Source of the DNA: Trichoplax adhaerens
Taxonomy: Eukaryota; Animalia; Placozoa
Direction: 5' to 3'
Assembly: GCF_000150275.1 (NCBI RefSeq)
Contig: NW_002060947.1
Span: 1,973,740-2,037,739 of the forward strand
Length of the DNA stretch: 64,000 nucleotides
Part shown: positions 10,801-42,200 of the stretch, in pieces
How positions within the stretch are numbered: position 1 is the first letter of the stretch
Layout: every line of letters starts with the position of its first letter
The notes under the pieces: generated by a model
Databases searched by the model: none
What the model saw: the letters and a program-made list of their open reading frames with translations, nothing else
Told to the model about the DNA's origin: nothing
Translations under genes and position numbers: made by a program

Positions 10801-13800
10801 ATGTAATCGTAGAATCGGGTTGTAATAACAGTGTAGCCAATTCTTACCAAATCAATTTCTCTAACTTTCATCATTTGACAGGTAACTCGTCAGACTCATC
10901 CCTTAGCGCAAATGGGTCAGATAATGAACCTAAGAAAGTTGCAACCGTTGAAGTCTCGACGACTTCTGTTATACTTGGTGAAAACGAGGCACTTCATTAT
11001 ATCAGTAAATCACATCAATTTAACCAACGAAAGCATCAATCTAATGCTGGCAAAAGCATCAATATTGATAACACACTTGCAGCAGCTATGAAGTCTGTTC
11101 AACTCTCTATTACTGGTATGAGCTGCTCTTCTTGCGTTGCTAACATTGAACGTGAAATTAAGAAAAAGAAAGGTTAAGTCTTGATTCGATTCATCGTGGA
11201 AGTGTTAGCCAGTATATGTATCATAAAATTCATTACACTAATTTCCTGAAAGTTTTCTGACAAATCAATCGTTATATGCATGTAGGTATCATTTCCATAG
11301 CAGTAGCACTCTTAGCTGAAAGGGGCGAAGTTACCTATGACGCAAACGTAACCAATCCTGAAGCTATTGTAAACGACATTACCGAATTGGGCTTTGGAGC
11401 GATAATAATCTCATCAGGAAATAATTCAAATAGAATCGAATTATCGGTAAGAAAGCTGTTGTACTACGACCAACGGGAAAATACGTATGCTATATTGAAT
11501 GGCCCTATTCCGGATATATTTTCAGATTGATAATATTGTTAGTCCCTCTTGCATTGATCATGTTGAGAGCTATTTTCGAGATCGTCCTGGGATTATTTCT
11601 GCAAGCGTATTTTTATCGTCAGCAAATGGTGTTTTTGAATATGATGCTTCTGTTACTGGAGTGAGAGATATCATTCGTGCATTAAATGTAGGTTTCATAC
11701 AAAAATTTTTCAAATTATATCTACTATTTGTAGCATCTTGATAATATTAATAACCCTATTCATTTACTCCTACTTTTATGCTGCCTTGTGATTATAACAG
11801 GAACTTGGTTACCCTGCATTACTTGCTACGAAAAATGATGCCTCAAAACAATTTAATCACCATAACGAAATTAAAAGGCAATGCTACTATTACTAAATTG
11901 TACATCAGTAATTCTTTTAGAGAAATTTATTATCTTTAATTATCTAAATTCGGCTGGCTAGAAAGTTTTCTTTTTAACAATATATATAATTTCTAATTTC
12001 CAGATGGAGGAATACTTTCTTTTTTTCGCTTATATGCTTTATACCGGTCGTTGCAATCTTGGTAACATCCGCTGCCTTGAAAAGTGATAGTAAGCCAATG
12101 ATAATTTTTCCAGGACTATCGCTTAAAAACCTTTTACTTCTTATAGTGGCGACTCCAGTCCAAGTAAGCTCTGTAGCTTGTTTATATAGTTTCCTGTTAC
12201 TGTTGGTGATAAATTTATTGAAGACGATGATAAGATTACAAATCTCTTTCCGACTGACGATCATTTATTTACTTGATTTTGCTCATGACTGGATAGTTAA
12301 TCGGCTGCAAACAATTTTACATCATGTCTTACAAAGCTCTTAAGCACCGTTCAGCAACAATGGATGTTTTAATTGTGATGGCTACGACAATTGCATATTG
12401 CTACTCGGTGTGTAGTTTAATATAACACTTCCGAAGCACAGTTCTGATACTGTCATATTTCTTTATCCCAACACTCTAGATTCTGTAATGCCTCATCTAT
12501 AATTTACTATTTTTCATTCATAGGTTACTGTAATTATCGTTGCTGCGATATTACGACCAGATAGCAGTCCACTCACTTTCTTCGAAACGACACCGATGTT
12601 GGTTACCTTTATATCGCTAGGTCGTTGGCTCGAGCATAGAGCAAAGGTACACATTTACATCTGTTGTGTAAACCAGTATAACATAATAATTCGACGTCAT
12701 GCCTTATACTCTAAGCTTGTAGTGAACTACAATGTAACGGAAAAGGTGATTACTGAGTCTTGTTGGAAGCACTGTACTTTTATGATAGCATTGCTTGCGT
12801 GATGTATATTTAATAAAATAGACAGTAGAGACGACTATGTGAACGCTTATTGTCATGTTAAACTAGTATACATGATATTCTTGTTTTAGTACAATGCTGT
12901 ATATTTTACACCGTACACTCTGATCACTTGTGGCTCGCTTACTTATAATGTTCAAAGAGCACAATTTTACTGTATGCATTGTACGACATAATTTTAGTGA
13001 TCAGTTTTAACGAAAATACTGAATTAATTGTATTCAGCGCAAGACCTCAGAAGCTCTTAGTAAACTACAATCTATGCAACCAACTGATGCAATTTTGGTT
13101 GAACTGGATTTTGATAACCAAGTCATCAAGTGAGTCTGTCTTTCGCATATGTTGGTTCTGAAATGAATTAAGCGTTACTGTAATAAAATGAAATTGTGTT
13201 TTTAATATTTCAAAAATGTTTCCCATTTCTCCACTAATTATAACAACTGAATCATTAAAGAGAAGAGAATATCTCGGTTAACTACATTCATCAAGGTGAT
13301 AATTTAAAAGTACTACCCGGAGCTAGAATCCCAACGGACGGTTATATTTTAGCAGGGTCATCTATGATTGATGAATCTTTAATTACTGGAGAATTCATGT
13401 CCGTATCTAAAAGTAAAGGAGATATGGTTATTGGTGGAACAATCAATGAATCTAGCGTGCTGATAATGAAGGCTTGTAGAGTTGGCGTCGATACAACTCT
13501 TTCTCAGATCGTCCGATTAGTTCAGGATGCTCAAACTTCTAAGGCGAATACTAAAAATGGTTGATTTCGAAATTTCTAACGAATTTAGCTATAATTAAAA
13601 TATTTGAAATTTTTATGCAGGCCCCAGTGCAATTGTTAGCAGATCGAATAGCCGGCTATTTTGTTCCTGGAATCATGTTACTATCTCTAATAACATTAAT
13701 TACTTGGATTTGTATTGGATTTGGGAACGTGGCCATTATAAATCCAGATATTGGCGTAAGTTTAGAATTACGATTATTAGCATCTTAATTCAACTATGTC

Positions 13801-18097: not shown

Positions 18098-21000
18098 ATG
18101 GATAATACGCAAATAACCCAACATATACTAGTAAGTATCGAAGGAATGACATGTAATTCCTGTATTAGATCTATCCAAGGAAATATTGCCGAAGTCAAAG
18201 GCCTTGAAAGTATTAAGGTATTTATTACAAAGTTAGAAGTAATTGGAATAATTCCGCAAATAAAAACTTTTATGATAAATGAATCAATAATCCTTTCATT
18301 TCGTTAGTTTAAAGCATAAAACTATGTATTTCCGGTAACGTGGATCAAATTCTATCCTATCAACAGCTAGTGTTCGAGTTGTGAATTCAGTTAATAGATG
18401 TATCAGTATCTGTATAACAATTTGATAGAATTCTCGAAAACATCGACAGTAATTTACGTCGAGATTCAATTTATTTTTATACATATCGTTTCTGAGTATG
18501 ATTTTAATGAAGTAGTCCTTTCTAGATCAATCCTAACAGATCTCTTAGTGTTGAGTTCATGTAATTTATAACAGCTTATACAGCATCGTTATAATTTTTA
18601 AGGTTATGTTAATCCATACTTTTTAGCTTAAAGTCCACAATCTGAATATCTTTCTATCATTTCATCACTTCGCGTAATCAATTTCTTAGCAACGATTGAT
18701 TTTTCTATTAAACTCTTCAATTATTACGCTATAGCCAGTTCAATCATCTTTTGAAATGATTTATTAGATATCCTTAACGCAAGAAGAAGGAGATATTGTC
18801 TATTTTCCTCATCTTATCGATCATCATCAAATCATAAATGAAATCCAAGATATGGGTTTTGGTGCTCAACTAAAATCCAATCTATTCAATTTACAGCTCA
18901 ATCTTCAGACATTACCTGCTGATTATGACCAATTAATAAAACATCTAATGGAAGTCTCTGGCATAGGAAACTGTTACATAGATGAGAAGTTAAATGCTCT
19001 TATAGTACGATATAATTACGATTTATTGAACTCTCCCAGTCCCATAATAGACTATTGCAACAAGTTTACTACTATGAAAACCAAAGAAAACGATAACAGC
19101 AATCTATCGAAGCGAAATGATGTAGCAGTATTAAATGTTACCGGAATGACTTGCCATTCATGTGTGCAATCTATCGAAGGAACATTATCCGACGTAAAAG
19201 CGATCCAATTTGTTGGGGTGTCACTAGAAAAGAATCAAGCCGTAGTCCAATATGACGATGAAGAAACAACTGCAAATGATATTGTAGAAAGTATCAAAGA
19301 CGTAGGATTCGATGCTAGTATCTTACAGGTATGTTGTTCATAATACTGTAAAAATGGCTAAGTATCTGTACTAGTTCTGCAAGAGCAAGCTATAGTCCGA
19401 TATAATGATAGGGAAATAATTGCGAGTGATATTGTAGAAAGAATCAAAGACATACCGGTAGTTTACGAATAGAATATCGTATAGTATTCACGATAGTGTA
19501 GAAATTTGAACTAGTTCTACTAGTTACGCAAGAAGATTGCTACTCTTTTACTGTTATACTACGGTCTTGACATTTGAACAATCATGGATTAGTTTACCGC
19601 CGCAGGAAAGTATGACATGTAAAATAGAGATTAGATTTTTATATATTACTTGCTACAATCTTTTTAAATGCTATTTTATAGACTAAAATAACGATGATCA
19701 GTATATTGCTAAGATTCAAGTCAATTTTTTGTAGTATATTAATCTACGTGTATAACGCTAATAGAGAAAAATATTTAGCTTAGGATTCGAGATTTATCGA
19801 TCATGTTTGCTATATAAATACAAGTAGATCTGCCGGTATAGCGCTAGTAGAAAAGTAGTTAACTTAGGATTCAGGATTTATCGATCATATTTTTGCTTAA
19901 ACACAAGTAGAATTTAATATTTCTTATGAAAATTATAGTATCAAAAAAATTGACTAAGATTAAGCCATTTGTAGATTAATTACAGTTTGTTCTACATACT
20001 TAACGATTTTCATTGAGCTATTTTTACCGCAATTACTAAGTTTGTGACTTCATTTTGATCCTTCTATAGTCGGAATCCAAGATGGCTCGCTATATCGCTG
20101 TAGATATCGATGGAATGACTTGCAATTCTTGCGTTAATCACATCCAGAGCTGCGTTCTGGAGCTAGCTGGCATCCATTTTATCCGCGTTTCTTTACCATT
20201 ACACAAAGCTGATATCGTCTTTGATGGTAATATTATAGCTCAACAACAAATTCTAGACATTATCAACGATACAGGATTTGATGCAAGCCTGATGGTAAAT
20301 GCAGCAGTAGCTCAAAATAATGGTAAATAAATCTTCTCACAATTTTCAAGTGATTCTACTTTGTTTACCCTACTTAATTCGTAATATAATTTTAAATTGT
20401 ATGGACTCATATTTATATGAACAATTCTTCACATTATCCTTTAAATAAATAGCATCCAATACCACCAATTCATCTAATTACCTTAATGACAAATCAAACA
20501 ATAAGAATTTAAATAATGTAACTGAGCAAAAAAAAAAACCAGTTGATGAAAGTAAAATCGATGTCAGCAAGAATAATTCAGAAAATTTCCAGGATGACTG
20601 TCATAAAGCTCCTAGAATAGATAAAGATCGAGATAAAGATCAAGTTATTGAATCAAAATCAATCCAGTTATCCATTAAAGGCATGACTTGTTCGTCTTGT
20701 GTCGCAAATATTGAGCGGGAAATGAAAAAAAAACAAGGTAATACTCAAGATGACTAAATTGCCTTATGAGGTATCCTTTTTACATCACCATTTGTAATTT
20801 TTCATCTCATGAATTTTATAGGAATAATTTCCGTTTCCGTGGCTCTGCTAGCGGAACGAGGAGAAATTAAATATAACTCTAACTTAACCAATGGCGAAAA
20901 AATCATAGCTCATATATCAGAATTAGGTTTTGACGCATCGATTCTACGACACATTAATGCCTCTAACCAGGTAGAATTACAGGTAAATGAATTATAAGTA

Positions 21001-29634: not shown

Positions 29635-32600
29635 ATGGCTTCTAATCTACTTGGACTTAGCCCGAAAGAATCCGATGCAGTCTCTGTTAAAGCTAGTTGT
29701 TTGTCGTTGTACATTTCAGGAATGACTTGTGCATTTTGTGCCAGAACTATTGAACGAGAATTGCAAAAACAAGAAGGTAAATTCGATGCTAGCATATCGT
29801 TATATTTTAATCTGTATAGTTGTACCATTTACTTTAATTTCAAGATTTTAAATAGTATATTTCTTGTATTAATTCTATCGCAATAAAATTATGAATGATC
29901 AGTTCAGGACTAGTTGTAACATGCTAACAAATTGAACATATTTAGGAAGTATTCTAAATTAGACATGATATAATCCTAATGCCGCATGTAAGTGTTACAA
30001 AACAGCTCTGCAGCGAGATAACGTGAAGTGCGATCAATAAGTTGATTCTCTAATCTACGTATTAGGGAGCAATATCTGCTCTATCAGAAAGATTTTTCCT
30101 ATGCTAGTAGACTACGCAAAAATTTATAAGCCTCGTATTTTACGTAAAACATTAATCTTAAGAACTCCCTTTATCATACGATATACCGCATTTTTATACT
30201 CATTTACAATAGTTAGACATCCTAGTTAGTAATATTAATATTGAAACCTTCAAATGAATCAAAAAACAATTTTATCTACTTCTACTTAATGAAGACAGCA
30301 ATATTTACGAACATAGACGTCTATTGACTAATACAAAATAGTCAGATTACAATATGTCCTATCACGGAACATTTCCATGATAATTGTAATCTACAACCTA
30401 CCATAAGTAAGTTATAATTGCAGTGATTAGAATTGCAAGAATATTTAAATCAGAATCTCACTGAATAAGGGTAAATCAAAAAATTAACCTAACATATATA
30501 TTTCTACTATAATCTCAATATTACGGTGCATAACTCTGTAACAGTAAGATTTCCCATTACCCTATCATTTAGGATATCTGGTTTTGAATATTTATTCGAA
30601 AAACTTTGTAGGGGGTTTTTTAATCAATCTAAAATATTGCTGTCAGACCGATAAGTGTTAAATTAAAGCAATTTTAAGTCATCTAATAGTGGAGCATCTG
30701 TATTAGGATTACAAGCTCCTATTTTCTTTTTATGTCTATCATATTCAGCCTTGCAAAACAAAATCCTATTTGTGGCATTCAAATTAGATCTTTTACTATT
30801 CTTACGCATAAGAGTATAATTTTATCGTCTACAATAGTACTGCAGAAAATATTCATATATCAATATGCAATCTGTTCAATAAATTTAAAATTATAAGACT
30901 TATATATAACATTTAAATTAGAGCAGCTCTACTACCAAAAAGCCAACAGCTGATTACTTTACGCTATCTATTAGTGAAAATCGATCCTAAGATCATAAAA
31001 CTGCGATTACTCGCTTCTGATTAGTTTCTGACTAGTTTTGTCATATTAGCTTTGTTAAATAGAATCTTCATGACACTGTAGAATTGGTCAATTGGATATA
31101 ATTTCATAGTTATATGTGAAATTTAAGGTATTCTTATCGCCTAGAATTGTATCGAAGTGAATATATGTTTATGCCGTTACACTTTTTATTCTATCTATCT
31201 CAAGTACAGTAGCCGTATAAATATAAAGTTATAGCAGTTGTATTATCTAACATGCGGTAATTGATTAATTTTAGGCTATTTAATGTTTTGAAAATTCAAT
31301 TCTAATGCCCTAAATTAGGAACATTTATCCTCTAATTGGCCCTTTGAATCATTCGTCAGGCTGTCCTTTTAAAATAAACCTTTTAGATTGCATACACTCG
31401 TCAAAATTAGATATTAACCTAATCTCACTATTCTCTTCCTATCATCATTGTAAGCAATGGAGAATATTTATGTTAGCATATTCGCATATGACTTTACTTG
31501 TTATTAAACCATTTTAAACATTTTTCACTCGCAGATACGAATATGACGTAAGTTATAATCAGCATATAAGTTAACTTTAACGAATCCTTTTTTGGTATTA
31601 GTTTAACAAATTTTGCAGCGTATTAATTTGCTTTAAATCATAATATTTAGCTAACTTTCTACTTTAATTTATCAGTTCATTCGCATTTATTGTACACGAC
31701 ATAACTGTATAAATTTTTATTTTGAGTGATAAAAAATAAGGGCCAAATATCTATTCAAATGTTTGTAACATGTATTTTTATTTATAGAAGCTTTCGCATA
31801 AACGTATACAACCGTAAAATTAGACTAATTCTGTCAAAAAATGAAATAATGTAAACAGTCAAGAGTACATCTATATCTTTTCCTAATGTAATGCACACCC
31901 TTCATCCTCTCGGTAGTCGTATAAATTTATCCATAAGTAACATTAGAGCAGTACTATTATTAAATCATATAAAGTCAAACTATCAAAAGTACCTCCATAC
32001 ATTCTCGTACGGTTGCGCTGGTCTTTTTATCAATCAAAACTGTCGTATAAATATAGATGATCACTAAATTAGGGTAGTTTCATCAAGCGATGAAATGATG
32101 CCGAATAGTAAGAAAGCATTTGTATCCTGATACTTGTCTTTTCATCACTTAAGCTATCGCTTAAATATAGACAAGAGTTAATAAAGCAATAATATGATAG
32201 CGTTGATTGATCATGTTTGATATCGATACTGGAAGCTAAGGTATTGTGTGCATGCTTAAAAATTACAAAAATACAAAATTTCATCCTTTTTGCTGCTCTT
32301 CTAGTCCTTTTATTGTGAATTTATAACTATTATACAGGTATGAAGATAAATAAGAGTTAATTTTGAAAAATTTAAAGAACCCCCCCCCCGTCCGTAAACT
32401 GCTTGAAATTATCCTGTACTAGATTATTTATGCATACAGTATATCAAAGTGTTACCTAAATACCGATCGACAGGAAATAAACTAACCCATTAGTTTAACA
32501 AATTCATACTATTTTTGGTTCTCAAATTAGGAATTATTGCTGTATCAGTGGCTCTATTATCATCAACAGGAAATGTTATTTACGATACTAATCGATTGAA

Positions 32601-35600
32601 AGCTATTCAAGTGCAAAGTCGAATACAACAACTAGGTTTCACTGCCTCAATATTATCAGAAGATGATCAGAATAAAAGCCGCATCGAAGTTATGGTAAAT
32701 AACCTAGCACGGGTACTGTAATAATCGTTTGATCAAGTTATAGACTTAATATCCCATTTTATGGCCTAGATTGAAAATTTAACATCCACCACTTGCATTG
32801 CTGATCTCAAATCCTCATTGCAAAGAATCCAAGGTGTTCAAACTGTAACAATCGTCTATCAAACTAAGCGCGCTATCATCAAATTTGATCCTAATCTAGC
32901 TAATATTCATCAGATCGTTAAGAAAATTCAGGTTGAATAGTTAGAGCTGACACTATAAAAAATTTATAGCTAATTCTTTACAAGTACAGAAAATAATTTA
33001 TCCTATAAAACTTGTAAAATTTTGGGCAATAACCTCGCTAATAGAGATTTTCATTTTCAGAATCTTGGATATAAAACAAATCTAATCACGCATGATTCTA
33101 TGCAAAATAACCTTCAGTGTGGGAAAGATATCCTAAGGTAATTTTATTGGAAGATCTTTATCTAACTATCTGTAATTTTAATCTAACTTTTAAATAAAAA
33201 ATTAAATGTTAAAGTTAGAAGCTATTTTTATTTTAACTGTAGATGGAAGACTGTATTTATAACTTCTATAATATTTTCCATACCTGTTGTGGTTGTCCTG
33301 ATCGCTTTCAATCAAAATAGACGAAAGCAAATTATTATTTTTCCTGGTGTATCATTAAAGAACCTACTTTTACTCGTGCTGTGTACTCCTATTCAGGTCT
33401 ATTACCTCATTTATTTCTTGATTTTACAATATCAGCGAGCGATAAATGTTAAAAAAGCTGATTTATTTTTTGTAATAGAATAATACATATAAGTAGTTAT
33501 GGCAAAGGTTTACAGAGTTAAAAGCTGAATTTAATTTAGTAGTAAGATAGGTGTTGCTTAAATTTCGAAGTCAAGAAATGACATCGATCGATAAGAACTT
33601 CCTATTCCCAATTCAGATAGCTTGCAACTTACGACTATTATAGCAGGGACAGTTCGGCAAGCATGGTAGTTATACAGAATCATTAAGCACATGTATTCAA
33701 AAGCTATTTTGTAATATTTATAATTAATTCTGGGAGCTATAAAAGATTAATAGGATTAGCTATAGATTGGACTAAGGGAGAATGAGCAATTGCATACAAT
33801 CATGAAAGTACATATCTAGAAGCCTTTTCCTTATATCTACAATTCTGCCTTAGAGCTATAAATGATTAATAGGATTGAATATGGCCTTAAGGAAAGAACT
33901 AGGATTTGTGCAGAACTGTGTGAATATTATAAAATTCATCTCAAATAATCTGCTGTAGAGAAGAAAGTCCCAAGCCGTTCAGTCTATAAACTAGATAACT
34001 AGAAATATTGTTAATCTATTTGAATTTCTAATGTTATTGTAGGTTCTTGGTAGTCTTCAAATCTATCCAGCCTCTTACCATGCAATAAAGTATCGTACAG
34101 CAAATATGGATCTATTGGTGTTTATAACAATCACTATTGCCTATCTATACTCAGTAAGTTTCGCCATTCACTGACTATGCATTCTTAAAATTATAACTAT
34201 TTATGAAACATTCAGTTAAATATTACCTTAACTTAAGAGATATTTTAGTCACTTACCTTAACATTATATAATTATAATTTGTCTTAAAATTGACTTCTAC
34301 AAATCAATATCAATATGAAATTTAGCAGAAAACAGCTATTGATTTTCAGTAATGGAATTATTTTCAATCATATGCCTTGTTATATTAATGCTATCGTATT
34401 ATTTACCTATAAATGAAATATATGTATTAACTTCTTGCGCTTCGCATAAGTAATTGACTGTAACTTTGAGATACGTAAAAAACATATAATTTTTATTGAA
34501 AGAAAACGGCTGTTAAAATATTAAACATTACTAAACTACTCTAACGGCTAGTTTTAAGCAGTAACATACTGTAGCTTTGAGAGATTGAAAATAAGATGGC
34601 TTCAAAACATTCGTCTACCGAAGTTTTTAGTCGGGGAATAATTTTTAATCATATACCTAATTATACCGATATTATCGAATCAATTACCTTTAAAGATATA
34701 TTAACTGGATAAACCTTTAGAAGCTTGTGCTCCTCAAAAGTAGCTTACTATAATTTTAAGATAACTATAAAATGTACAATATTTTTTATTAAAACAAAAT
34801 GTCTACTAAGATATTGAACATTAACAAAAAATTTCACCGGCTAGCTAGTAGTAGCATACTGTACGGCATTAGAACATCGAAATAAGATAGCTTTAAATAT
34901 AATATTGATCTACTAAATTTTCAAATATTAGCTGGATACAGTATCATAACTATAAAACAAATTGCAACTTTCGGATATAATTATAATAGCTTGTACTGCA
35001 ATCTTTGCAATCATGCTATTACAGAAACTATCTACAAAGATTGTAAACATTAATTAAATGATCCTTTCTATATCCATTATTAAATAGTATGACAATAAGC
35101 TATATTAATTAAGTATTTCGAGTACAATTATATGGGAATTTACGGGAATCACTACGAACTAAACTATTCAACTTTAATGAATAAGTTTTAAACAGTGGAC
35201 ATCTTGTTAAAAATATAAATTTAAAAAATAAATTACTGTGCAAAGTTACTTGAACAGCTATCATCGCTTTACTGAAGTTTCACAATGAATGAATCTCGCT
35301 AAATCCCATTTTAATAATTACCAATAGGTCATTGCAATGATTGTTTCGGCAATAGCTAATCCACAAACTAGCCCAGACACATTTCTTGAAAATCCTCCAT
35401 TAATCATGACATTGGTTTCACTAGGGCGATGGATAGAAAGTCTTGCAAAGGTAAGCTATGAATACTTTTCTATGTTGTGTTTAAATTGCCTGTTTACGTG
35501 GATATTTTCGAGATAATTATCCTTTAGCTAAATCTTAATTTGTATTGTGTTCATATAAGAATAAAGCACTAGAATCTGCTAGACGATTTCTTCCATCGAC

Positions 35601-38600
35601 AAGTACAGAAGCTTTACTGGTTGTTCTAGGAGCAAATGGACAAATTGAAAAGTAGAATCAATTTAAGCACATCTACCTCTAATTTCTAATATTATTCATT
35701 TGGATTTGAAGCTATAGCGTACAATAAATTTTTCACTTATTTAACTAGAGAAGAAATGATCCCTACGGATTTAATGCAACGTGGAGACACAATTAAGATT
35801 TTACCAGCTACTCGAGTACTAGTTGATGGAGTAGTCATCGCTGGATCATCAACGGTTGACGAATCAGTTATTCTAGGGGAGACAACACCTGTTCAGAAGC
35901 AAATTGGTGATAAAGTATTTAGTTTATCTATAAATCAACAGAATCCTCTTATCATTAGAGTGGAAGGAATGGGTATGAATACCTTAGCATCGCAAATTGC
36001 TCGCTTAATTTATAAAGGACAAAGTTTAAAGGTTATCCATTGCTAATGAACAGTATAAAGTAGATCATTCTTTTGAATCTTTTCAATTCTATTTGCTTAT
36101 GCTATTATTTCATTCATGGCTACTAGGTTCCTATCCAGCTATTAACCCACAGTATGGCTAATTACTTTTTCTGCATCATTATTTCTTTATCTATGATCAC
36201 ACTGATATTATGGATCATCATCGGCTATAGTAACGTCCAACTTATAGATTTTCAATTTAATGTAAGTAATAGTTGTTTCATAGCTGGGTAAAATTTGGAT
36301 TAAATTAGAATGTGCTGTATCCAATTATACATAAAGCATAAGCATCCTATACTGAGGCAGGAAAATTAGTTGCAGGTTATCTCAAAAATTGATCAATGTA
36401 ATTTTCATATGTTTAAATTAGAATGCGATATATCAATCTATCTTATATCAGCATATCTGCTCATCACGAGCTAACTGCTGTGCTTTGTGTTGTTGCAGCC
36501 AAAATTCTACAACATCCACGAAGTAACATTGGAATTTGCATTTCGTACTGCTATTGCTGTTCTTGCTGTTGCCTATCCATGCTCTTTAGGCTTAGCAACA
36601 CCAATAGCTTTGATAATCGGGATTGGCATTGCTTCAAGAAATGGTATTCTTATTAAAGGAGAAAAGCCACTGGCTCGTGCAAAAGGGGTTAGCTATAACA
36701 AGATTTGAAAAAATTAACTTGAAGAAAATTAGAATGGTTGTGATTTAACGAATTAATTGAGGTTTATGGTGCCTTAGAATTACTTAAACTATTCCATTAT
36801 TACAATTTTTTTAAGTAAATAAAATAGAAACTAGCATCGACTAACGATGATGCTGATAATCTGCAAGTACATAGAATCGAACCAATTTTCTAAAAAGTTA
36901 TCACTAATGCGAAGATGAAACTTTCTATCCAGCTCACAACTGTTTTCCTAAATAAAACTGGAACAATTACAACAGGAAAATGTAACGTAAAACTTGTGCA
37001 CAGTTTTGTCGACGAAAGACAATGTTCCAAGTCGAAACTAATAGCCTTGGCAGGTGCTGCAGAAGCCTGTAGTGAACACTCCGTTGCAGTAGCTATTAGC
37101 AATTATGCCAAAGAGGTTAATCAGTGATGTAGCCTAATTTATAATTTTAATTTTGACTCTTTGGTAGTAAGTAAGCCTTTCTTCAATAATCTTTTTCTAT
37201 TACTATAAAATTAATTCCAATTTGATGAAATCCATCCAAATTTTACAGCGTTATCGCTTTTTTACAGTTTTTTCAAGTAGACGTTCTAGGCGATGTTAGT
37301 GATTTTCAGGAAATGCAAGGCTTGGGGATACAATGCACCGTCACTGATATTGATAACTTGCTAGAAAATACAACTTATGAAGGTTTTTGCGCGGATTTAT
37401 TAAGGATATAAATATATATTAATGAAAACTGCTTAAACATATGCTAGAAAATACAATATAGAAAAGTCTTAGTTTCAATATATTATGAGCAGAGACATGT
37501 GAAAAATGATCTTCTGCTTGTATTCATCAAATAATGTTCCTATTACTATTTAACACTAATAGCTATATCTACTGACTATAATAATACATTTTCTATTTCA
37601 GATATACCCATTAGCCCAAATTCCATCAATAAATCGTATAAGCTAATGCGTATCGACAGTGTAAGATCATATAGGGTTGTTATTGGTAATAGGCAGTGGA
37701 TGCATCGAAATTGCATTTATATCGGTGATGATGTCAACGATTCTATGCTGAAAGAGGAGAGAAATGGAAGAAGTGCTCTATTGATAGCAGTTAATGGTGA
37801 ATGATTATGTAGTAACAAGAATAAGTTACAGCCTTGAGCTTCCATACGTTCATAATTAATGCCTACTATTTCATTAGATTTAGCAATTGGAATGATATCT
37901 GTAGAAGAAAAGATCAGATACAATGCACAAAATGCCATCGATGCTATGCGAAGAATGGATCTCGATGTCATCATGTTTACCGGTGATAATCGTCATACTG
38001 CAACAGCAGTAGCAAGTCAAGTATGCACAATTAATCCATGAAATAGCTGTCACCAAAGCAGCTTTAGAATTATTGACTATAAAATGCAATAGATAATCAT
38101 ATTAGCATGCATTAATCTCGCAGAATTGTTTAAATTAAGAGTTGCTAAGTCGTAACTCTGTAATACATGTATGTGAAGCCAAAGCAATTACCGGTAGGCT
38201 TGCAAATACTATTGCTAATCAGATCGATATAATTAGGTTGGAATTAAACATTTATTCGCTGAAACGACTAAATCAAGCCAACTAGCCATCTTACAAGCAA
38301 TGCAAAGGAAGGGTAAAGTTGTTGCTGCGCTCGGGAATGATTCATCAGATTCGTCTATTTTAGCTAATGCGGACATCGGCATTGCTATTGGCAGTAATGC
38401 ACATCTTAGTATTGATTCAGCGAGTATTGAGATTATAAAGGTAACTGCAAAATTTGGAATGCTGTTAGTGTAAATTGATTTTTGGATACGGATGCTGCCG
38501 GTAATAAGATAATTCTAATCAAATTAAGAAATACTTCGCATCTATTATACAATATGAAAGCATATATACTATCACTTAATAAAATCATGCGATAATAGCT

Positions 38601-39288
38601 AATATTTTAGCCATCTAGTAGCAAAAGCTTCTAAATCATTAATGTTAATAGAACAGAGTAAATTATCCGTTCATATGCTATTTTTTAAATTCTTCTGTCA
38701 AGTTTGTAATTACTATAAATTGGTGTTTAGTTATGCTTCTTTCATGTAATGACTAATTGATCGATTTCACCTTGAATATTAGGATAACTTGGTTAATATC
38801 GTATTTGCAATTAAATTGGTTCGCTCAATCAATCGAAGAATTCATTTCAATCTCGCTATTGCCATCATGTTCAATGTTGTCGGAATCTGTCTAGCTGCTG
38901 GCATTCTACATCCTGTTGGGTTCACCCTCAGACCTTGGCAGGCGAATGCTTGTGCGGTATCAATTTCTGTCCTAATAATTTTATCTTCTCTTTCACTAAA
39001 ATGGTACGAAATTTGTCCTTATTAAGTATTTCTACCTTTTACAGACTGTTATATTTGCATATTGATATCTCTATACTTGTTTATAAATTTAGGCATAAGT
39101 CACCAAAATTTAAGGCAAAATCACAAACATTACCCAAGCGATTCAAATTTAGGGAAGGTAATGAAGAAAATGGAGTCGAAATTTGGGCTGATAATAAATG
39201 TACGAAATCTTTAGAATCCTCCAAGGAATCATCTAAGTCTTTATTAGGTGGTACTTACAGCACAACAAATGACAGCTCCTTTATGTAA
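29635..39288 (+). CDS. Divergent ATP7-like paralog 3, 18 exons, intact frame but predicted catalytically dead (pseudo-ATPase)
   Basis: Exons approx 29635-29776, 32531-32694, 32770-32931, 33061-33137, 33243-33396, 34043-34153, 35328-35450, 35560-35651, 35749-36031, 36127-36261, 36499-36687, 36933-37115, 37268-37382, 37602-37796, 37878-38020, 38237-38440, 38783-39003, 39093-39288. They are homologous to exons 4-21 of the paralogs, all GT-AG, with no stops or frameshifts. Motifs read GMTCAFC, LGE, YPC, NKTGT, SEHS, TGDN, GNDSSD, FN and WQANACAVS. Confidence 0.88.
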
Positions 39289-42200
39289 ATGTGGAAAGAT
39301 AGTAATAAACAATGATGAAATTCGTAAATTAGAATAAATGATTGATAACTACATACGATATAGGATGAAGCTATTACTGTAGCAAATAAAACCACTAGTT
39401 TGGATGCATGAGGCTTTCAAAACTGCTTCAATGGTGAACTATGGAATGTGTAAAGTATCTTTTATTCGGAGTAACTATTCTTTCCTATACGAGAATCTTG
39501 GAGTGGTCTATTGTAAGAAACATGAAATATTGAATCATGTTGATTGTGATAATGATGATATATTCATAACCATTTCAGTATCATTTAATGTAGCACCAAT
39601 AAAGGCTAAAGCAAACTTTTAGAACCCTTCTATGACATCGTACTTTGATAGCTAGACATAGCCAATATCATCAATAACGATTAAATCATTAAACCGTAAT
39701 CTTGATACAAAAAGAAGAATGCTAATTGCATCTGAAGGAGAAATTAAAGTTTCGTATCTATACTGACTATTATGTAGTAACCTATAATATTAACGTATAT
39801 TATTGCTCGATTTCTAAAGTAGTTACGAGTACTGATATAACACTAGTCTAATAATTACAAATGTCAAGAATTTAACGCTCATATAATAGCTACTTATGGA
39901 TTAGCCGATAATTATCTAGCTAAGATTATTAATAGCATACTCAAGTTTTTTTATTTGATCAAAAACTGTTTATACCACATTTTGACTTCAAAATACTTAA
40001 TTAATTAGCTATATCACTTATTTTACAGCTTTTAGATCATATTTTTCCAGAGCATGGAAGTAGATTTGCATTAACAACTATAGAGCATTAGAATTAGACA
40101 CCTTTTGTCACAGTTTATTTAAGTTAATTGCTGACTAGCTAGCTTGCGGACCCGATCGGTGAAAAATATCTCACTTAGCCACTAAAGTGCTTCTTATTAA
40201 CAACTGGAATAGGTTATATCTTGAAAGTCACGGATTGTGTGAGTATGTAGTAATTTTCATGATCTATCCTATTTTTGCATCATTCAATTCTTAGTAGAAA
40301 GATAGTATGCCCGTATGAGCCATCCTATTGTAAAGACATCGTAACTTTTTGAAAATAATTGATCGAATTTGAATGGAAAATCTTATTTGCATATTTTAAC
40401 TTCATTTAGTATATTAATAGCCTTTCAGTTATGCAGTGAGTAAGGATTTTTAAATGATTTACATTAATAATTTTGCATCACTTAGCGATATGATGCCATG
40501 ATTAGCTAAATGTTGCATTCTATCGTAGTTGCGTATATAATTCCATCTTCAATTTCAACAATGACTATAACGTACAAAGCAGCATTTAAGAGCGCACGGT
40601 ACATCCAAATGATCTATTCAATTGAATTAAAATTGGTAATGTCCGATAGTCTTACTCCATTTTATCAATATGCCTAGTCATAGATAATTACCTCCATTAT
40701 TTTAGTATTTATTAATTGAAAATCTATTACTAATTAATTAAAAAATGATTTTATGGCATAAATCTGTTATCGATTTAACTTCTTTTACAAAAGCATTTTA
40801 AAATTGCTCAAAATAGGCAGAAAAAATTAATTTATCTCTATCCATAATGGTAAAAATACAAGCAAGTTGATAAATTTCTTCTGAAAATTGGGCAAAGATG
40901 CAATAAGAATAAAAATAAGCAAGGTGATTTTAATATGATGTCGCGCAGCTATGGGCGATATGATATCCATACAACTGAGTAAAGTATATTATAATCTTAT
41001 GAATTATAAATAATCAATACAAGCAGCAGTAGTTTTTGAATTGCAAATAATCATTAGAGGCAGTAGATGCCTAACTCATAAAATTACAGCTGGCCACCGG
41101 TTTCACATGTTCAGGAACGAATGTGAATCACAGCAGGTGGACAAAAATCGAACGATAATCTTTATTAATACTACGTCAGATTACAAATGTTTATTTTTAC
41201 TACAATACAAACGGCGCAATGATTAGCAAAATTTATAAAATACTTCCGATAAAAATAATTATAATTGTGTCCAACCCTACATTATTAGGTCGAGCGTATA
41301 TATTGATATTTATCAAATTGAAATTAGTTACAGTAATTGCTATAATCAATCATCAATAATGTATCGTTATTATCTTCAGTCTAATACTCTTAGAAATAAG
41401 ACTTCGTTCTACATAATTACTCCTTATTTACTCGCAAATAAAAGTGCCATACAAAGTTCAGTATTCTCAAGCATTATATAATATCGCAATTAATTAATTT
41501 ATTAATGAACTAATCGACTATGTCCTTAAATTTTACGTTAAGGAAGGACGTATCTTGAAGTAATTTACGGAAAGGCTCGTAAATTATTTAAATTATTATT
41601 GTGATAGCCAGCAGTGCTGCACACATAATTATGGATAATTCTAATTTATAAAGATATAATTAGAGCGTTGATATTGCAAAAATTTTATTGTTATCTAACT
41701 GTTTCACATATCCTTGCTAATTTAATTAACTGTAATAAATACTTTCAATGCTGCATGAAATTATAAACTTAAAAAGTGATTTGAGTTACGTAACAATTTA
41801 TGCCATCCATGCTAAAAAAACAGAATAGCTAGCATGATATTAAATCCAATGATTGCAATAATAAAAAATAATAAATATATCAATGACAACGATTGAATTT
41901 CAATTCTAGAAAGTGTTTACCATTAATGATAGTAGTCTGTTACAGTAGTTATTTCGTTATCAAAATACATTGTAGTAGCGTTCTATCTATGAATATAATT
42001 AAATAATAGATTGCATAATAAGGGATAACTTTTCATGTATTATCTGTTGACTACCTAAGTATCTCGTATTATGACCATAAGTAATCGTGTACCAATTTAT
42101 AAAAGCAAGCTATATTATGTCCTAGTATCAATATGAAAAACGATACATTAGTTGGAAATGAAAAAGGGAAAACTTGGTCATATCGAAATCATGTAAAATA

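Follow-up and report, generated by a model that had tools for sequence, protein, structure and literature searches.

The stretch analyzed here, called the window below, comprises 64,000 nucleotides of Trichoplax adhaerens DNA (contig NW_002060947.1, positions 1,973,740 to 2,037,739). It is AT-rich (GC around 30%) and carries three ATP7-like copper ATPase genes in tandem, all on the + strand: P1 (~10.5-16.0 kb), P2 (20.07-26.5 kb) and P3 (29635-39288). P3, the subject of this work, is a genuine gene that descends from ATP7 and is transcribed and spliced, and purifying selection on it goes back beyond a deep split among placozoans. We give a probability of about 80% to the reading that it is a selectively maintained, non-catalytic pseudoenzyme derived from ATP7. 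Two properties of a pseudoenzyme were found: homology to an enzyme in the absence of essential catalytic residues, and purifying selection after the loss of catalysis, the latter seen in losses shared with an ortholog and in a ratio of nonsynonymous to synonymous substitution rates (dN/dS, or omega) of 0.14. From established P-type ATPase enzymology, P3 is predicted to be unable to run the P-type cycle or to occlude Cu(I) in the membrane, because the catalytic Asp, the TGE and GDGxND motifs and membrane copper ligands are gone. A previous inspection of the letters of this DNA (the sequence-only reading) had taken P3 for a maintained non-pumping protein and not for a decaying pseudogene, a view now supported by spliced RNA, by an ortholog at ~31% protein distance and by dN/dS.

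Lost and kept residues in a transcribed gene

The catalytic positions of P3 were inspected in the rebuilt gene. The phosphorylation loop reads LNKTGT (36948-36965), with an Asn codon, AAT (36951-36953), at the Asp of the canonical DKTGT; the A-domain reads VILGET (35867-35884), where LGE (35873-35881) replaces TGE; in the P-domain hinge GNDSSD (38333-38350) replaces GDGxND, TGD being kept, and the Lys of PxDK is changed to Gln (KSSQ, 38270-38281). Within the transmembrane helices (TM), AYPCS (36571-36585) in TM4 shows YPC (36574-36582) for CPC, MFNVVG (38867-38884) in TM5 shows FN for YN, and PWQANACA (38933-38956) in TM6 replaces PWMASAAM with loss of the Met, so that, of four Cu(I)-ligand positions in the membrane, three are gone (CPC to YPC, YN to FN, and the Met). 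All these replacements (NKTGT, LGE, YPC, FN, GNDSSD, the Gln and QANACA) had been proposed from the letters alone and were recovered at the same coordinates.

Much of the protein is kept. Seven canonical ATP7s (those of lamprey, sea star and abalone, P1, an ortholog of P1, P2, and P4, a further Trichoplax gene described below) share 214 invariant positions, and P3 retains 137 of these. The ATP-contact residues of the N-domain (the His of SEHPL, GxGI, and the GN of IGNREW) are present in both P3 and its ortholog, in the forms SEHS or SNHP, GLGIQC and GNR(Q/E)WM, and they align to the human N-domains, so nucleotide binding by this domain is probably kept. An N-terminal CxxC-type HMA domain is also present (GMTCAFC, 29719-29739, Pfam HMA), as one domain seen in the genome of the window, and through it Cu(I) binding is probably kept. 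The protein probably still traffics, given that the SLLG motif of its tail is kept; ATP7A and ATP7B carry di-leucine or tri-leucine retrieval signals that this motif resembles. In Pfam, pieces of the exons match HMA, E1-E2_ATPase and Hydrolase, and they align to human ATP7A and ATP7B structures, so chance similarity does not explain P3. Hydropathy peaks were found where expected for MA, MB, TM1 and TM3-6, TM2 being weaker and under the cut-off of this crude scan.

The open reading frame of P3 joins 18 exons into 2889 nt (962 codons), its sole stop being the TAA at 39286-39288, and a stop codon lies in frame 10 codons 5' of the ATG. All 17 introns are GT..AG, in agreement with the earlier claim of 18 in-frame exons with canonical sites. 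Thirteen junctions (33394 to 39092) were taken from spliced contigs of public runs and are all GT..AG once the cut points are shifted slightly; for the four upstream ones, homology to P1 and P2 was combined with the GT-AG rule. The exons are as follows.

P3 exon 1, 29635-29776, +: ATG and first half of the CxxC HMA domain, GMTCAFC at 29719-29739; homology model, donor GT
P3 exon 2, 32531-32694, +: second half of the CxxC HMA domain; ag/gt flanks; homologous exons at 11286-11446 (P1) and 20822-20985 (P2)
P3 exon 3, 32770-32931, +: second HMA fold, without CxxC; Pfam HMA 41 bits; 162 nt as in P2
P3 exon 4, 33061-33137, +: linker; ag/gt flanks; 77 nt as in P2
P3 exon 5, 33243-33396, +: helices MA and MB; donor from RNA joint 33394>34041 (X6, X7), acceptor by homology
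P3 exon 6, 34043-34153, +: exons 6-8 form TM1, TM2 and the start of the A-domain; RNA joint 34153>35328
P3 exon 7, 35328-35450, +: within the TM1/TM2/A-domain start block; RNA joint 35447>35557
P3 exon 8, 35560-35651, +: within the same block; RNA joint 35651>35749
P3 exon 9, 35749-36031, +: A-domain, LGE for TGE; RNA joints; Pfam E1-E2_ATPase 7.7e-21
P3 exon 10, 36127-36261, +: TM3; RNA joints 36029>36125 and 36261>36499 in all four runs
P3 exon 11, 36499-36687, +: TM4, YPC for CPC; RNA joints
P3 exon 12, 36933-37115, +: phosphorylation loop NKTGT and N-domain SEHS; RNA joint 36686>36932 (X5 and X7 only)
P3 exon 13, 37268-37382, +: N-domain (exons 13-14 keep GLGIQC and IGNRQWM); RNA joints
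P3 exon 14, 37602-37796, +: N-domain; RNA joints; exons 13-14 align to 2kmv (ATP7A) and 2arf (ATP7B)
P3 exon 15, 37878-38020, +: P-domain, TGDN kept at 37979-37990; RNA joints; Pfam Hydrolase
P3 exon 16, 38237-38440, +: P-domain hinge, KSSQ and GNDSSD; RNA joints
P3 exon 17, 38783-39003, +: TM5-TM6, FN and PWQANACA; RNA joints
P3 exon 18, 39093-39288, +: cytosolic tail with the SLLG di-leucine motif and TAA; RNA joint 39002>39092

Exon 1 gives a partial Pfam HMA match and has its donor at the same position as in P1 and P2; the hydropathy peaks of exon 5 fall at amino acids (aa) 186-241; the joints of exons 6-8 are all GT..AG and were seen in three to four runs; and exon 12 aligns with positions 1015-1081 of human ATP7B. 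Exons of 111, 123, 283, 135, 189, 143, 204 and 221 nt have the same lengths in P1, P2 and P3, with identical intron positions, at a per-exon identity between P3 and P1 of just 35-53%, which bears out the earlier statement that exon lengths are largely conserved despite heavy divergence.

P3 has no counterpart to the first HMA domain that P1 and P2 carry; it has a single CxxC domain and one degenerate HMA fold, and no exon of the first-HMA type was found upstream of it, between 26 and 29.6 kb of the window. The last HMA folds of P1 (11499-11738) and P2 (21150-21371) likewise lack CxxC, so the degenerate second fold of P3 was inherited and is no part of its decay.

For transcription, four runs from four studies (one declared RNA-seq library and three guessed to be RNA) were aligned to 33300-39290 (5991 letters). 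P3 introns are removed at GT..AG in contigs of all four runs, with at least nine junctions per run and 13 of the 17 distinct junctions overall. Exon 12 is single copy in the assembly, so the spliced contigs do not come from a processed copy or retrocopy. The contigs that cover codon 36951-36953 (X5, X7) read AAT and no other letter. The two checks asked of RNA data by the sequence-only reading, a spliced transcript and the Asn codon in reads, have thus come out in its favor. At the 5' end, one X7 contig reaches 825 nt upstream of 34041, and exons 1-5 total 699 nt; this extension is compatible with the 5' gene model plus a short untranslated region.

A single-copy island at 33647-33976, within P3 intron 5, lies under short unspliced contigs (X5, X6, X14), whereas no contig covers the other long introns; an alternative exon, a small transcript of its own or leftover intron RNA might each account for it.

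Two other features of the window serve for comparison.

P1, 10500-16010, +: canonical ATP7-type gene; all catalytic and copper-ligand motifs, including PWMASAAM
P2, 20070-26480, +: canonical ATP7-type gene; all motifs, including PWMASAAM; 77% identical to P1 (581 codons)

P1 and P2 have two CxxC domains each and carry the canonical motifs, and so appear to be the two adjacent pumps of working type that the sequence-only reading had seen. Copies were also sought throughout the assembly (105.6 Mb, 1414 contigs). A fourth ATP7-type gene, P4, lies outside the window on the minus strand (G000:C1397, ~709800-713000; L008), with canonical motifs, PWMASA, and a per-exon identity to P1 of 50-77%. Judged by its motifs, then, the genome would hold three canonical copper pumps and one dead copy, P3.

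Conservation in a second placozoan lineage

The A-domain exon of P3 was compared by phmmer with a representative library; the comparison yielded an 85-aa exon reading frame (P0002), 75% identical and with LGE kept, and no full-length protein of the P3 type. A search with the NKTGT exon returned a 106-aa reading frame carrying NKTGI. The ortholog was recovered on four contigs from two ENA metagenome assemblies (L001, 686 bp; L002, 519 bp; L003, 5591 bp; L004, 1722 bp), which cover everything between the A-domain and the stop codon except the end of exon 10, with a frame open throughout. Its exons have ag/gt flanks and lengths of 283, 189, 183, 115, 195, 143, 210 (204 + 6) and 221 nt, plus a last exon that is shorter; apart from this one and from a 6-nt insertion in the hinge exon, the lengths match those of P3. 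The exons bearing the changed motifs are the following.

Ortholog A-domain exon, L001 184-466, 283 nt: LGE
Ortholog TM4 exon, L003 207-395, 189 nt: YPC
Ortholog phosphorylation-loop exon, L003 947-1129, 183 nt: NKTGI with an AAT codon

P3 and the ortholog have LGE, YPC, NKTG (AAT) and FN in common, and both have lost the TM6 Met (PWLANAS in the ortholog). Since these losses are common to both lineages, the losses of catalysis and of ligands are older than the lineage split. The hinge differs, the ortholog having GHCTDILD, with the 6-nt insertion, for GDGxND, and still having the Lys of PxDK (QDK), so the GDGxND motif appears to have gone on drifting after the split. The tails are 47% identical, with K-PKF, FKF-E, G-EIWA and SLLG kept. 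A homology search with the exon-1 reading frame of P3 gave no match to the first exon of the ortholog, the one that would tell its CxxC state, and the tail of L003 has no detectable similarity to the window downstream of P3, so there is no support from synteny. A scan of JGI metagenomes by alignment of the N-domain exon returned only L007, 43% identical and presumably from a canonical Cu-ATPase.

Selection was estimated over the 607 aligned codons of the P3 pair, with dN of 0.20 and dS of 1.0-1.9 depending on the method. Omega was 0.14 by NG86 (bootstrap 95% 0.10-0.19), 0.11 by maximum likelihood and 0.20 by LWL85; identity at codon positions 1, 2 and 3 was 78%, 84% and 53%; and seven intron pairs were similar at the level of shuffled sequences (within ~1 standard deviation). 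The comparison of dN/dS with an ortholog, another check that had been proposed beforehand, gives therefore 0.11-0.20 over 607 codons, with the Asn AAT codon kept. The pair differs by 31.5% in protein and by 28.3% in coding sequence, and the genome-wide means for orthologs of T. adhaerens and Hoilungia hongkongensis are 28.3% and 28.5%, respectively, 97% of those pairs having dN/dS <0.5 (PMC6067683). As the distances of P3 are close to the genome-wide means, P3 is constrained like an average placozoan gene, and the relative that bears the ortholog would stand at about the inter-genus (Trichoplax-Hoilungia) distance.

A working pump was available for comparison, an ortholog of P1 on L005/L006 (Logan contigs from two runs of a divergent placozoan-like organism), 82% identical to P1. 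In most exons this gene is nearer to P1 than to P2, so the P1/P2 duplication is also older than that split. The P1 and P3 orthologs come from different samples (Logan and ENA contigs), and dS is 1.4-1.9 in both pairs, which suggests a similar depth.

The distribution of constraint differs between the two pairs. In the P3 pair, identity reaches its top in the N-domain exons (87% and 83%), followed by the NKTGT exon (77%), the A-domain (76%), TM3 (75%) and TM4 with YPC (71%), and falls to 64% in the TGD exon, 57% in the GDGxND exon and 56% in the TM5-6 exon. In the P1 pair, by contrast, the TGD and GDGxND exons are 91% identical each, TM5-6 86%, the A-domain 81% and the N-domain pieces ~58-74%. 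The order of constraint in P3 is reversed with respect to the P1 pair, that is, constraint has shifted. Furthermore, 51 of the canonical-invariant positions are changed in both P3 orthologs, and the same derived residue is found at 28 of them, with 8/8 in the A-domain exon, 7/9 in the YPC exon, and 4/13 and 3/12 in the last two exons.

Origin, possible role and rival explanations

Phylogenetic trees pair P3 with its ortholog as sisters at a support of 100; the stem leading to the pair measures 1.2-1.3 substitutions/site and the terminal branches ~0.3. The pair falls inside the metazoan ATP7 clade (SH-aLRT 99), with (P4,(P2,(P1,L005))) and the bilaterian ATP7s; the six placozoan rows are monophyletic in the best tree, with a support of just 75. 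Local duplication is the simplest origin of P3, on account of its tandem position and shared intron positions. The long stem and short tips mean that most of the excess change predates the lineage split and that the rate then fell; such a burst followed by renewed constraint would indicate, and fit with, a loss of catalysis succeeded by a new constraint.

The best match to E1-E2 ATPase in the genome (G000:C254:833-1177, 109 bits) lies on a small contig, in a frame free of stops for 392 aa; this seemingly intron-less ATPase may come from a bacterial symbiont or a contaminant.

The history that we propose begins with the duplication of a metazoan ATP7 pump, after which the P3 copy would have lost the Asp, TGE, GDGxND and three Cu(I)-ligand positions, selection then protecting the N-domain most of all, along with the A-domain, the eight-helix scaffold and the first half of the P-domain. 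The product would be a non-transporting membrane protein that takes Cu(I) from a chaperone and binds nucleotide, and a copper-dependent interplay between the metal-binding domain and the N-domain, together with the trafficking signal, might allow it to sense or buffer copper status. Alternatively, it might regulate the three active ATP7 paralogs, for example as a partner in hetero-oligomers. A sensing, regulatory or scaffolding role is proposed because conservation centers on the N-domain, the A-domain, the Cu(I) domain and trafficking. That P3 serves as a nucleotide- and Cu(I)-binding copper sensor, buffer or ATP7 regulator that moves no copper is, in our view, a tentative proposal, with odds somewhat below even. 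Of the roles suggested, a passive conduit for copper is the least probable, as the membrane copper ligands are gone in both lineages and constraint is lowest in the ligand-bearing helices.

Several points weigh against the pseudoenzyme reading or bound it. The comparison covers one other lineage, known from metagenome contigs and from the A-domain to the stop. The P1 pair has an omega of 0.05-0.10 at similar dS, about half that of P3, so P3 would be approximately twofold more relaxed than a working pump, in a comparison whose organisms may differ. Six of the eight exonic differences between strains or runs are non-synonymous, all of them conservative, and by our own estimate six or more of eight would be expected with a probability of ~0.02 under an omega of 0.14; this excess may reflect slightly deleterious variants among clones or a constraint recently relaxed in the Trichoplax lineage. 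Contigs of X6, X7 and X14 run from exon 11 into intron 11 (36688-36932), so part of the P3 RNA is unspliced there, and read-through meets a stop after 7 codons, ahead of the NKTGT exon. Expression is supported at the RNA level, from runs three of which are guessed to be RNA, though the spliced junctions argue for it; these runs consist of contigs, in which rare variants are hidden and from which neither low-level editing at the Asn codon nor the level of expression can be read. Upstream of 33394, support for the exon 1-5 junctions comes from homology and from the 825-nt contig extension, and the sensing or regulatory role is drawn from the pattern of conservation.

One exonic difference, 38385 C>T (Ala806Val), is found in all three organism-A runs, so the allele in the assembly may be strain-private or an error.

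The most direct rival is that P3 is an unprocessed pseudogene, still transcribed, whose open frame has survived temporarily. The joint loss of the catalytic motifs, the long P3 branch, the non-synonymous strain variants, the partial retention of intron 11 and the fact that the introns of P3 are longer than those of its neighboring paralogs would all agree with decay. Nevertheless, a frame of 962 codons is open in Trichoplax and one of more than 600 in the ortholog despite a synonymous divergence above 1/site, dN/dS lies at 0.10-0.19, splice sites and exon lengths are identical across lineages with introns randomized, and the divergence equals the genome-wide mean of functional orthologs. These data largely refute the pseudogene, which we consider the most improbable of the three rivals.

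Hardly more probable is a P3 that still transports, be it as a pump of altered chemistry or by conducting copper or some other ion, passively or with facilitation, through the eight-helix domain. In favor of it, all eight hydrophobic helices persist, and the TM4 exon is 71% conserved, with the Pro-Cys of CPC and the flanking LGLATP. However, Asn is unable to form the acyl-phosphate, and Asp-to-Asn and Asp-to-Ala mutants are the standard dead controls; TGE and GDGxND are lost too, and the copper ligands of TM4, TM5 and TM6 are replaced in both lineages, the TM5-6 exon being the least constrained (56%). A membrane-tethered copper chaperone or buffer, in which the catalytic and membrane remnants merely anchor the CxxC domain, accounts for the one canonical GMTCAFC kept; it leaves unexplained the top conservation of the N-domain and A-domain and the derived residues fixed there in both lineages, and the search for the first exon of the ortholog found nothing, so that CxxC is seen in one lineage. 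We regard this possibility as improbable too, if slightly less so than continued transport, and retain the selectively maintained pseudoenzyme as the reading of P3.

Comparison with known P-type ATPases

P3 may be a non-pumping derivative of ATP7, kept throughout the crown-group divergence of placozoans, that senses copper and nucleotide at the membrane or joins the three active pumps as a regulatory subunit, though we would not put this at even odds. If true, it would be the first natural pseudoenzyme among P1B-ATPases, and a case of a primary active transporter turned into a signaling or regulatory protein. Pseudoenzymes are well studied in kinases, phosphatases and proteases, and almost unknown in primary ion pumps. 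As a natural separation-of-function mutant of ATP7, P3 could reveal which non-transport roles of ATP7A/B (copper sensing by way of contacts of the metal-binding domains with the N-domain, trafficking, partner binding) stand alone, and these roles bear on the biology of Menkes and Wilson diseases; Trichoplax, culturable and with four ATP7 genes, makes the question experimentally tractable. In a full-text literature search of incomplete coverage, we found no study of a placozoan ATP7, no NKTGT motif in a P-type ATPase and no pseudoenzyme of this superfamily beyond the P4-ATPase-guanylate cyclases (P4GC; PMC13466520), which agrees, within that coverage, with the earlier remark that no described ATP7 pseudoenzyme was known from an animal.

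With ATP7A and ATP7B, the metazoan P1B-1 Cu(I)-ATPases, P3 shares the HMA domains, the eight-helix topology and the order of the A-, P- and N-domains, as well as the SEH-type His, GxGI, GNRxW, TGD and a C-terminal di-leucine motif. It departs from them in having lost the phosphorylated Asp, TGE and GDGxND, and among the copper ligands CPC is without its first Cys, YN without its Tyr and TM6 without its Met.

The nearest natural parallel is offered by the P4GC of protists (alveolates and stramenopiles), in which some flippase modules lack the Asp of DKTGT and the Glu of DGET and a supporting or sensing role is suspected (PMC13466520). As in P3, a P-type module has been retained minus its catalytic Asp/Glu, and P4GC modules are essential (PMC13466520). 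The two differ in that the P4GC module is a P4 lipid flippase fused to a cyclase in protists, whereas P3 is a free-standing P1B derivative of an animal, with active paralogs adjacent.

The Asp lesion of P3 is also that of engineered mutants such as ATP7B D1027A and SERCA D351N/A, and the human ATP7B chain 7xuk_A reads AKTGT at the position of NKTGT in the alignment. SERCA Asp mutants still bind ATP, some of them with higher affinity. These mutants are laboratory constructs, whereas the lesion of P3 is natural and conserved, and it is accompanied by the loss of TGE, GDGxND and the copper ligands.

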